Assembly (NCBI GenBank): GCA_025594325.1
Contig: JANHCV010000004.1
Location: 2,356,001-2,420,000, forward strand
Direction of reading: 5' to 3'
DNA from: Blastocladiella emersonii ATCC 22665
Taxonomy: Eukaryota > Fungi > Blastocladiomycota
DNA length: 64,000 nucleotides
In this document: positions 28,966-32,988 of the stretch, piece by piece
Layout: each line of letters starts with the position of its first letter
Position numbering within the stretch: position 1 is the first letter of the stretch
Position numbers and translations under genes: made by a program
Notes under the pieces: model-generated
Database searches by the model: none
Told to the model about the DNA's origin: nothing
What the model saw: only the letters and a program-made list of their open reading frames with translations

Positions 28966-31900
28966 TCACTCCGAGTCGGACGAGTCGTCAAACTCGCGCG
29001 TCGCCGCGTCGTAGACGCTGCCGTACTCTGGGCGTCGGGTGAGCGCGCCCTGCTGGGTGATTTCGGGTCCGAGCGCGGCGGTATTGATCCCGCGGCGCTG
29101 GAGGCGGCGGACGACCTTGGGCATGAGCGACGCAGGCTGGGTCCACCGCGCCGCGGTCTCGGTGGACGGCCGGTGGATTGGGACGCGGTACCGGTCGCGG
29201 TCGAGGAGCGCGGGCATGACGCTGCGCGAGGTGGCCGTGGACAGGTGGCCGAGGTACGTGGACGTGTTCTGCAGCTCGTTGACGAGGACCACCACCTGCA
29301 TGTTCTGCGGCGCGGCCGCGCGCACCTGCGACAGGAGGTACATGTGCAGCGTGTACAGGGCGTAGGCGGCCTCGAGCACGGCGAGGATCGCGTAGTGCAG
29401 CTCGGGCAGCCCGCACGCCTGCAGGTCGGGCCCGTTCTCGAACAGAAAGATAAAGTACGGCTCGAGCCCGAGGATCAGCTCGCGCGTGCGCTGCGCGAGG
29501 TCGATGCGGACGTCCGTCGACAACGCGTCGGCGTGGACCAGGTGAAAGTTGCCGTCGAGCGCGATGCCGGCGGCCGCGACGTGCGTGTGGAACAGGAGGA
29601 TCTGGGCGAGGACGCGCGCGTACAGCTGGGTGAACCGCTCGCGCACGTCGTAGGCGCTGCGCCACTGGTTGCACAGGTGGTCGACGACGCCGCGGCGCGC
29701 AGCGAGGTCCGCGACCATGGACGGCGCCGAGTGCTGCAGCACGTGGTGCACGAGAAGGAGCGCGCGCAGCGACGCCAGCACGCCGTTGGCCGCCATGATG
29801 CGGCCCACGCGGTCGAGCCACCACGCCATGGGCGCCTGCTGCTCGAGCGAGCACCGCCACGTCTCCGTCACCAGCCGCACCAGGTACTTGCGCTTGTACT
29901 CGGGACACGAAAAGTACCGGTCCATCCACTGCAGCCGCTGGTCCTTGCGGTGCCGCTTGACGACGCCGCTGCTACCACTGCTGCCGCCGTTCGAGGAGGA
30001 CGACAGCGACGCGCCGTTCCCACTTGGCGGCGGAGGCGGCGGGGTCCCGCCGCTATTGCTGCCGACGCCGTTCCCGTTCCCATTCATCATCAGCCCAGCG
30101 CCCATCCCCTGCATCGGCGGCAACCGCGGCGGCGGGAGCGATCCGGCGCTGGCGCCGAGCGACTGCGGCATCGAGCCCGCTGGCGGCGGCGGCGGCATCG
30201 GCGGGGGCGCGGACATGCCCGAGCCGGGCATCGGGCCCATGGCGTTGCTGCCGGCCGAGGGCGTGCGGCGGTGGCCCGCGCTCGAGGACATGGCGGATGG
30301 CGGGGGCGGGGGCGCGAGCGCCGCGTTCGGGGTGCCCGCGCCGGACCCGGGTGCCGACGACCCGGCGCCGGCGTACGGGTACACGTTGCGGCCGATGAGC
30401 CCGGACACGGACGCGGCCTTGGGCCGGTTGGCGAGCGCGGCGCCGGTGTTGCCGCCGCCGTACCCGGGCGGGAGCGTGTTTGGGTACCCACCGCCACCGG
30501 ATGCGTTGCCCGTGTTGGGCGCGGAAGCGGGCGGCATGGGCGGGTACGGCGCGCCGCCGCCGGACCCGTACTCGGAGCCGCCCGTGAGCGACTGGCCGCC
30601 GGACCCGGCGGGCGTGATGCGCGTGAACGAGCCGCTGAGCGAGCCCGAGCTCGACAGCATGCCGGCCGTCGACACCTTGTAGTGCTGGACGTGCGGCGGC
30701 TGCGATTGCTGCTGCTGCCCGTACGGCGCGTTGCCGGGCGCCATGGGGTCGATGCCGGGCATGCTAGGCGGCGGCGGGTACTGCTGCTGCTGCTGTTGCG
30801 GTTGTGGCGACTGCATCTGGACCTGCTGCATCTGGAGCTGGAGCTGCATCTGCTGGTGCTGCTGCGGCGACAGCATGAGCGGCGGGGACCCGTGGATCGC
30901 GGACGCGAGCGACTGTGGTGGCGGGCCGCCTCCCGAAGACGACGACATGGGCTGCGGGAGCGTGCCGTCGGGCCTGAGCGAGAGGTACCCGTACTGCGCC
31001 GGATCGCCGCCGCCATTTGCGGGCGGCGGCGGCGGGTACATGGGCGTGCGGCCGCTGCCGCTCGGGAGCGGCGACGGCGGCGAGTTCTGGATCTGCTGGT
31101 GCGCGTGCTGCTGCTGCTGTTGGTGGGAGGGAGGAGCGAGCTGCACGGGCGAGTTGGCGGCGGCCATGTCGTCGAACCGCGGGGTGCCGTACTGCGACAT
31201 GCCGGGCGCCTGCATCGGTGGCGGGTGCATGGCGGGTTGCGGCGACGCCTGCTGCTGCTGTTGCTGCGGCAGTGGCGGGTGCATGTGGTCGACGGGCATG
31301 GGCGACGCCGTGAGGTCAAACGGCTGGAACACGGACTGCTGCTGCAGCGACGAGTGCGGGTGCTGCTGCTGCTGGTTTGCGGGCGGCGGCGGCTGCATCA
31401 TGGGGGTAGGGTAGTCCATGGACATGGACGGATTGGACTGCGGGACGGGGACGCGGCCACGGCGCATGGGCGCGGGGAGCGGCTGCGGCTGCTGCAGCGG
31501 CGGGGGCATGCCGGGCCTTGGCGGGATGCCGCCCGCCATGCCGGGGACGGTGGCGGCGCCGCCGTACGGGCTCATCATCTGCGGCTGCGGGGGCGGGAAG
31601 GTGCCCTGGGCCTGGGCCTGCTGCATGGCGGCGAGCAGGGGCGGCGGCTGCGGGCGCGTGAGCTGGGCCATGTAGGCGACGGCGGGGATGGGCGGTGCGT
31701 CGGCGTAGATGTTGTCGATCGGGCAGGGCAGGCCGCGCAGGCGCGAGACCTCGGCGACGAGCTGGAAGATGGTCGGGCGACGCGCCGGGTCCTCGAGCAG
31801 GCACCAGCGGATGGTGGCGATCAGGTCGCCCGAGAAGGGCGGCTCGGCGGGGATGCGGTAGCGCGCGTTCATGATGGCGTTGACGCCCTCCTTTTCGAAG

Positions 31901-32988
31901 GGGGTGGTGTAGTAGCACAGCTTGTAGAGCATGACGCCGAGGGCCCAGACGTCCACCTTCTCGTTGATGCCGCGGCCCATGTACACGTCGCACAGCTCGG
32001 GGGCGCGGTACTGCAGGGTGGTGTGCTTCTGGACATCCTCGTGGATCACGTCGAGCTCGATCTTGGACACGGTGAAGGTGGCGGAGCGCGGCGGCAGGAT
32101 CTGGGTGGTGGCCGAGCCAAAGTCGCACAGCTTGAAGTGGTCCGAGTTGGAGACGAGGAGGTTCTCGACCTTGATGTCCTGTGGGCGGCGCGGATCATGG
32201 TCGGGAGAACCGAGGTAGTCAGCACAAGGGGTCGGGAATAGGCGCGAGGGCGAGAATAGTGGTACGAGGGGTGATGTCGCGAAGGAGGGGGGCAGCAGAG
32301 GAGCGGAGGGGAGAAGCACTCGGCTCGAAATAGCACGCGCGACACCGGCTCGGGGGAGCCGGGCCGGGGCCTCGAATAGCACACAGGATCCAGGATATCA
32401 ACCGATCATGGAGGGTTGGTTGGAGGGAGCACGTACGCGATGGATGACGGGCGGCTTGGCGTAGTGGAGGCGAGCGACCCCCTCGCAGGCGTCGCCAAAG
32501 ATCTTGAGGATCTCGCGCTCCTTGAGGCGGTCGTGCAGGCGGCTGTTCATGAGGTCGACGACGTGGCCGCCTGGGGAGGAGCGTGGTGTGAGCGGAGGTC
32601 GGTGGCGGGGGGAGGAGGAGCAGAGCGGTACCCTGGCAGTACTCCATGAGGATGAAGGTGTGCTGGCCGTTCTGGTTGACAAACTCGGCGTCGATGAAGC
32701 GCACAATGTTCTTGTGTCCGCTGAACATGCGCTGTGTGCAGGCGAGACGGTGAGCGGATCGCGTCGAGCAGTCGATCGCAGACGGAGTAGTACCATGTAC
32801 TGGACCTCGTTCTGCATGCTGCGCATGCCCTCGGAGGTGTTGGTGGTGACGGACTTGAGGACGACGACCTCGCCCGTGGGCTCGAGGCGCGCGAGGTAGA
32901 CGTGGGCGAGGCCGCCCTCGGCGAGGAAGCGGTCGACGAGCGCGCGGTGGCTGCCGACCTGCACGGTCGCGCCTGGCATGAGCTTCAT
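28966..32988 (-). CDS. NAK-family (Ark1/Prk1/Akl1, AAK1-like) Ser/Thr kinase with Q/P-rich linker and C-terminal ANTH-like domain (4 exons)
   Basis: [31 protein letters not shown]|[15 protein letters not shown]|[26 protein letters not shown] and [12 protein letters not shown]. The last exon continues with no stop into an ANTH-like domain. Confidence 0.9.

Follow-up and report, generated by a model that had tools for sequence, protein, structure and literature searches.

Introduction

The disassembly of endocytic coats is under two controls, namely phosphorylation by kinases of the NAK family (Ark1/Prk1, AAK1) and hydrolysis of phosphatidylinositol 4,5-bisphosphate (PI(4,5)P2, hereafter PIP2). 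AAK1 reaches endocytic sites by AP-2- and clathrin-binding motifs, and in GAK (auxilin-2) the NAK kinase is joined to a PTEN-like lipid-sensing module, which determines when GAK arrives at clathrin coats. For the yeast kinases Ark1/Prk1, the route is binding of the Abp1 SH3 domain to proline-rich motifs (restated in PMC2064142). In yeast, phosphorylation by Ark1/Prk1 and PIP2 hydrolysis are separate steps of uncoating, both of which are recruited via Abp1 and actin (PMC2064142). Here, we analyzed a gene on the minus strand of a 64,000-nucleotide stretch of DNA from Blastocladiella emersonii ATCC 22665 (the window, whose coordinates are used throughout), the product of which, P0001, combines in one polypeptide a NAK serine/threonine kinase, a disordered linker and, at the C-terminus, a Sla2/HIP1R-type ANTH domain with an additional basic helix and an acidic tail. 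A previous interpretation made from the nucleotide sequence alone (the sequence-only reading) had proposed such a fusion.

P0001 belongs to the same kinase family as AAK1/BMP2K (BIKE), the Schizosaccharomyces pombe Ppk30-type kinases and Saccharomyces cerevisiae Ark1/Prk1/Akl1. It shares the post-kinase motifs PCPIxNIY and MRRGR with the fungal NAK/BIKE kinases, and the long disordered region that follows the kinase in P0001 is also found in AAK1/NAK/BIKE kinases; an endocytic role is expected. However, in the position where Ark1/Prk1 and AAK1 carry their recruitment motifs, P0001 has a folded, predicted lipid-binding domain. The closest functional analogy is GAK, whose kinase is the third-best solved match; its lipid module is of the PTEN-like/C2 type, whereas that of P0001 is an ANTH domain, and the clathrin-binding and J domains of GAK are absent from P0001. 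Sla2, HIP1 and HIP1R share the ANTH fold with the domain of P0001 (Z 20-21, rmsd 2.8-4.0 A over 241-269 residues), and the ANTH domains of Sla2 and HIP1R are the only significant sequence-profile matches of the P0001 ANTH family, in which the KRK(H/Y) motif is retained together with the counterpart of Sla2 W36. In Sla2/HIP1R the ANTH domain is N-terminal and is combined with a coiled coil and an I/LWEQ (THATCH) actin-binding domain, while in P0001 it is C-terminal and both other elements are lacking. The Pfam scan of P0001 gave no I_LWEQ match, whereas the true Sla2-like protein P0010 shows ANTH plus I_LWEQ. Moreover, the equivalent of Sla2 R29 is not kept in blastoclads, and the extra basic helix and acidic tail are found in P0001. 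P0001 is not a Sla2 orthologue and shares with Sla2 the ANTH domain alone.

Gene structure and continuity of the reading frame

The complete coding region occupies positions 28966-32988 and consists of four exons (32988-32794, 32731-32632, 32570-32437 and 32178-28966, with the stop codon at 28966-28968), the join of which gives exactly the translation of the 1213-residue GenBank protein P0001, named there only "Ark- serine/threonine protein kinase". Introns 1 and 2 (62 and 61 nucleotides) are much shorter than intron 3 (258 nucleotides, 32179-32436), which according to gene model and sequence interrupts the HRD of the catalytic loop between R and D. D144 of HRDIKVEN is thus the start of the last exon, and from there the frame is free of stops through the linker into the folded domain, as the sequence-only reading had described from DIKVEN onward. 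All peptides that it quoted, among them stretches of 49 and 20 residues, are indeed present in the last-exon frame, i.e. in the minus-strand open reading frame (ORF) 28966-32382. Its linker of about 550 residues is confirmed in its Q/P/G-rich composition and is now estimated at about 575 residues (residues 310-883, 29959-31680, low complexity, 74% guanine plus cytosine (GC)), and the folded domain that it placed at about 29100-29960 is found there with the bounds 29053-29958 (residues 884-1185). The precomputed Pfam lists contain only the kinase for P0001 and for P0003 from Allomyces macrogynus, and the C-terminal ANTH domain has no name in the public annotation of either B. emersonii or Allomyces.

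At 70-74% GC an open frame alone is weak evidence for a fusion, because the antisense frame of the last exon is also open. This antisense ORF is stop-free over 1129 codons (28852-32241, plus strand), and its product is R/G/A-rich nonsense; we reject it as a gene, since it mirrors a coding frame rich in GC at third codon positions. Such chance-open frames invite the view that the fusion is an annotation artefact, in which a short NAK kinase gene and a separate neighbouring ANTH gene were merged across a GC-rich spacer. Two further points speak in its favour and weigh against a fused gene. The look-up of sequencing runs for the stretch listed no RNA run, and the public gene models of Catenaria anguillulae and B. 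britannica divide the locus into a kinase gene of about 300 amino acids and a downstream gene, approximately 120 nucleotides apart. However, the downstream "hypothetical protein" holds the linker plus the ANTH domain in both species (C. anguillulae L001 3975-7280, MCFL01000014.1; B. britannica L002 3842-7693, MU624614.1), and these models look like mis-split genes because the gap does not interrupt the reading frame. In Catenaria, the kinase model lacks a stop codon, the downstream protein P0002 begins in the same frame, and one uninterrupted ORF connects the two.

In every relative the linker keeps the frame open, even in one whose base composition hardly favours this. The metagenomic relative L006 (41.5% GC, protein P0005) has no stop in the 295 codons between kinase and ANTH domain, while the remaining five frames of the same region carry 10-20 stops; the probability of such an open linker from base composition alone is about 9e-7. 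In addition, two conserved in-frame islands are found inside the linker, MRRGR (residues 381-385, 31453-31467), which a regular-expression scan found to be common to all 117 other fungal NAK/BIKE kinases examined, and RPKxxSVSG, which reads RPKAASVSG in B. emersonii (residues 728-736, 30400-30426) and is kept in four blastoclad species. For A. macrogynus (P0003) and Sorochytrium (P0006) the public annotation has one protein that comprises both the kinase and the C-terminal domain, and gene order and orientation do not vary among seven taxa. Hence, we consider an artefact very improbable, and the comparison between genomes settles the predicted fusion of kinase and ANTH domain in one reading frame.

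The C-terminal ANTH domain

The assignment of the C-terminal domain was based on Pfam, a family profile, an AlphaFold2 (AF2) model and structure comparison. Pfam reports the kinase (Pkinase) in P0001. For ANTH (PF07651), residues 830-938 of the exon ORF score 21.0 bits (E 1.9e-4) against a cut-off of 21.5, a suggestive match but just under the gathering score, which weighs against the assignment in B. emersonii taken alone. The orthologues P0006 and P0007 pass this cut-off with 27.7 and 28.3 bits, respectively. Searching the PDB with a profile of three blastoclad sequences retrieved the Sla2 ANTH domain of Chaetomium thermophilum at 1.3e-5, and a profile of all seven family sequences retrieved C. 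thermophilum Sla2 (3.3e-13), S. cerevisiae Sla2 (3.9e-10) and HIP1R (1.6e-7) and no CALM or AP180 chain at E values up to 1. The same profile scored the canonical ANTH proteins P0009 and P0010 with 71 and 57 bits.

The predicted fold points in the same direction. A first AlphaFold model of the C-terminal domain had a mean predicted local distance difference test score (pLDDT) of 72, and the first 13 places of its Foldseek search were all taken by ANTH domains. In VIA-align the Sla2 ANTH domain led with Z 21.0 (root mean square deviation, rmsd, of 2.8 A over 241-246 residues), followed by CALM (19.9) and HIP1R (19.8), while the next unrelated chain reached Z 8.9. A second AF2 model, built from the seven-sequence alignment, improved to pLDDT 86 and a predicted template modelling score of 0.87 with 13-14 helices. 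When this model was compared exhaustively and independently of Foldseek with 48,161 chains, HIP1R (Z 20.3), Sla2 (19.9) and AP180 (18.2) were leading, and CID, VHS and ENTH domains came next at Z 9.7 or less. As expected of an ANTH domain (about 250-290 residues), the AF2 model shows an all-helical ENTH-like core that is extended by further helices. The domain is divergent, with 12-16% identity to solved ANTH domains. Because the profile matches only Sla2/HIP1R ANTH domains and the modelled fold matches ANTH, the C-terminal domain is assigned to the Sla2/HIP1R type. The Sla2/HIP1-like ANTH domain of the sequence-only reading is therefore borne out by family profile, AF2 fold and Foldseek alike; the Sla2 peptides that it had cited likewise recur in the PDB alignments of the S. 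cerevisiae and C. thermophilum Sla2 ANTH domains.

Lipid-binding motif and family-specific tail

In S. cerevisiae Sla2, the KRKH motif (K24, K26 and H27, with K14 nearby) binds PIP2, whereas the interaction between its ANTH domain and ENTH involves R25, R29 and W36 at interface 1 and K10/K13/K14 at interface 2 (PMC8129110). In HMMER and MAFFT alignments, the residues K905-R906-K907-Y908 of P0001 (29884-29895), at the start of helix 2, align with K24-R25-K26-H27 of Sla2, R906 thereby being the equivalent of R25, and W917, which is conserved in the family, aligns with W36. The basic KRK patch noted before is thus retained. The K/R/H-x-K-Y core is kept in six of the seven family members and its second lysine is invariant in those six. 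At the sequence level, the PIP2 signature K-x9-K-x-(K/R)-(H/Y) of helices 1 and 2 can be recognized, the position of K14 being filled by R897 via a loop two residues shorter than in Sla2. Helix 1 is strongly basic (KRHRK..R..R), although a one-to-one match to K10/K13/K14 is uncertain.

Several observations argue for caution regarding a fully Sla2-like surface. In the canonical Kx9KxK(H/Y) signature, the initial lysine has only an arginine as counterpart, and this only by way of a gapped alignment. Sla2 R29, which is needed for ENTH binding in yeast, corresponds to V910 in B. emersonii, with R911 adjoining, and the Sorochytrium model is without helix 1 and the KRKY motif. Since KRKY and W917 are kept while R29 is replaced by V910, the lipid-binding motif appears retained and the epsin-binding surface partly retained.

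Two elements distinguish the family from the canonical Sla2-type ANTH proteins P0009 and P0010, in which both are absent. A basic helix of 11 residues (1163-1173, 29089-29121) is conserved in seven of seven members and packs against the ANTH domain in the model (pLDDT 84-88). The alignment also shows a conserved end (residues 1186-1213, 28969-29052; pLDDT below 50, thus predicted as disordered) with the sequence RPEYGSVYD and an acidic DSSDSE. Within this tail, YGSV matches the YxxPhi pattern, and CK2 sites are resembled by the acidic serine cluster.

The kinase domain

The kinase domain (residues 8-309, 31681-32967), identified by the Pfam Pkinase match and by phmmer against the PDB, is interrupted by all three introns. 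Its best solved matches are AAK1 (9e-74), BMP2K (6e-70) and GAK (3e-54), with the next family, MARK, following at 5e-23. The reading of P0001 and its alignment to AAK1 show all catalytic residues (K45, E61, H142-R-D144, D162-F-G164 and Y200-RAPE), hence the kinase is active-looking with intact catalytic motifs. With regard to the NAK-specific C-terminal helix of the activation segment, a 15-residue segment of P0001 aligns with EDEIKKYTTLSYRAPE of AAK1. The nearest proteins are fungal NAK/BIKE kinases with 50-54% identity from Mortierellomycota, Mucoromycota, chytrids and Ascomycota, some of which are named ppk30, PRK1 or AP2-associated kinase. The kinase-domain tree follows the species tree, and the ANTH-bearing blastoclad kinases form one clade among the fungal NAKs (Shimodaira-Hasegawa-like approximate likelihood ratio test, SH-aLRT, 91). 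Because nearest relatives, the MRRGR motif common to the 117 kinases and the tree agree, the gene is classified as the orthologue that represents the fungal NAK/BIKE kinase in blastoclads. Regarding the initial proposal of an Ark1/Prk1-type NAK kinase, the family assignment is upheld, with the qualification that the kinase is nearer to AAK1/BIKE than to Ark1/Prk1 in particular.

Distribution and origin

A profile search among 1.84 billion representative proteins found six family members only; two canonical ANTH proteins were marginal matches. The fusion is known from two Blastocladiella species, Catenaria, Allomyces, Sorochytrium, the metagenomic blastoclad-like contig L006, and P0007, a eukaryotic NAK-ANTH protein from bioreactor metagenomes whose kinase matches AAK1 at 5e-74. 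Word searches with the C-termini gave three matches for P0001 and one for P0007. In the alignment of all seven members no stretch was conserved enough to serve as a scan pattern, and scans of metagenome contigs with family patterns yielded no confirmed relative. Among the 117 further fungal NAK kinases, not one matched the ANTH profile (E above 0.5), so that a hidden ANTH domain in other long fungal NAK kinases was rejected; this is in line with the premise of the sequence-only reading that known NAK kinases lack such a domain.

The gene of P0007 contains, at L003 5001-7919 (protein residues approximately 690-750), a T-rich, Cys/Phe-rich in-frame insertion inside the ANTH domain, which looks like an intron left in place and translated by a prokaryotic gene caller.

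Further kin may exist in the ESM Atlas, where a cluster of 64 members with an 834-residue representative carries Pkinase in 100% and ANTH in 89% of its members; it was compared by annotation, features and structure. This cluster is the top language-model feature match for P0006 (0.96) and P0007 (0.98) and the top structural match for the ANTH model, with a template modelling score of 0.70 over 287 residues. Its commonest label is Chlorophyta, the labels being automatic and known for 12 members only. Taken together, the kinase-ANTH architecture is not unique to B. emersonii and occurs in blastoclads, in P0007 and possibly in the ESM Atlas cluster.

The wide phylogenetic distance of P0007 raises the question of whether the fusion arose once. 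Its kinase is placed outside the fungal NAKs on a long branch of the kinase tree and is equidistant from every fungal group sampled; it is 47% identical to the B. emersonii kinase and, in the median, 46% identical to other fungal NAKs, which shows no special affinity to blastoclads. Furthermore, the NAKs of chytrids, mucoromycotes and ascomycetes are without ANTH, so that a single origin requires several losses. Both observations would fit an independent, convergent origin in blastoclads and in other lineages (P0007, the Atlas cluster). On the other hand, the three-sequence blastoclad profile found the ANTH domain of P0007 at 1.3e-12 among the 1.84 billion proteins, compared with 2.2e-6 for the best canonical ANTH domain, and P0007 has the same domain order, the same family-only basic helix and the same acidic tail as the blastoclad members. 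Because the ANTH domain of P0007 is nearest to that of blastoclads and shares helix and tail with it, a single origin is favoured and convergence appears unlikely. Hence, by sequence comparison, the kinase-ANTH fusion is probably older than the Blastocladiomycota, with losses in the other fungi.

Proposed mode of action

The best overall explanation of these data, which we regard as likely, is a three-part NAK-ANTH protein whose ANTH domain places the kinase on PIP2-rich endocytic membrane. The ANTH domain would bind PIP2 through R897/K905/K907/Y908 and thereby set the kinase directly on such a membrane, where it might sit beside the ENTH domain of epsin as in Sla2. The long linker could act as a tether that allows the kinase to reach and phosphorylate coat and adaptor proteins, and hydrolysis of PIP2 would then release the kinase and end its residence. 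Phosphorylation by Ark1/Prk1 and PIP2 turnover by synaptojanin, which in yeast control uncoating separately, would be coupled in one protein, and recruitment by the ANTH domain would replace the Abp1-SH3 route of yeast Ark1/Prk1. With regard to this step, the Sla2 ANTH domain localises to endocytic patches on its own, depending on its lysines (PMC2064142), and a regular-expression scan of P0001 found none of the motifs NPF, DPF/DPW, FxDxF, WxxF, clathrin box, SH3 PxxP or the Prk1 site LxxQxTG. Since the Sla2 ANTH domain localises alone and P0001 is without SH3 PxxP, NPF, DPF and clathrin box, the most likely means of recruiting the kinase is the ANTH domain itself. Both the binding of lipid and the self-targeting of the kinase to endocytic sites are inferred.

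However, ubiquitin, SNAREs and other proteins are further ligands of ANTH domains, so that lipid targeting is not the sole possible role. It is conceivable that the fold is that of ANTH while PIP2 anchoring was lost and the domain serves as a protein-binding or regulatory module, which might bind the ENTH domain of epsin, ubiquitinated cargo or a SNARE, or which, folding back together with the basic helix and acidic tail, might autoinhibit the kinase. The low identity to solved ANTH domains and the Pfam score under threshold in B. emersonii would be compatible with such a change, as would the replacement of the first signature lysine and of R29 and the conserved C-terminal elements that canonical ANTH proteins do not have. 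In addition, ubiquitin binding is reported for the ANTH domains of CALM, HIP1R and Sla2 (PMC8648300). Nevertheless, the K-x-K-(H/Y) core has remained basic/aromatic in all family members except Sorochytrium, with its second lysine invariant, and helix 1 is strongly basic. Moreover, Sla2 demonstrates that lipid and protein binding are not mutually exclusive. We therefore judge a loss of PIP2 anchoring to be rather improbable and prefer the lipid-anchored kinase as explanation.

Novelty and significance

The gene itself is already in GenBank, standard tools detect the ANTH domain in its orthologues, and automatic databases already contain the architecture. However, the literature search for a kinase-ANTH protein found no description, and such a protein is mentioned neither in the survey of ENTH/ANTH/VHS domains (PMC3473312) nor in the Dictyostelium kinome paper. 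A more far-reaching view, which we put forward tentatively as a possibility that at present is rather doubtful, is that the NAK-ANTH proteins form an ancient and so far undescribed class of self-targeting endocytic kinases, which would be present in blastoclads, in at least one unrelated protist and possibly in green algae, and would have been lost in animals, chytrids and higher fungi. In these proteins the Sla2-type ANTH domain would insert the kinase into the PIP2/epsin coat lattice, with PIP2 gating the phosphorylation of the coat.

No principle is overturned by the NAK-ANTH finding. A natural protein combining a NAK kinase with a Sla2-type ANTH domain offers a ready-made test of how coat phosphorylation can be timed by lipid sensing, and besides GAK it represents the second case in which a NAK kinase and a lipid module are combined. 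The public annotation is corrected with regard to the unnamed domain in B. emersonii and Allomyces as well as the split gene in Catenaria and B. britannica. Furthermore, the finding adds to the evidence that early-diverging fungi retain architectures lost from model fungi.

Neighbouring genes

Two further ORFs of the window were noticed beside the kinase-ANTH gene. On the same strand, the ORF at 27474-28052 ends in a twin CX3C peptide (CFKLC ... CLSKC) and resembles an exon of a small Tim (Tim9/10-family) mitochondrial chaperone. The divergent neighbour on the plus strand (33689-37024) is a large ORF of an SNF2-family (SWR1-like) helicase with long acidic and Ala/Pro-rich low-complexity regions.

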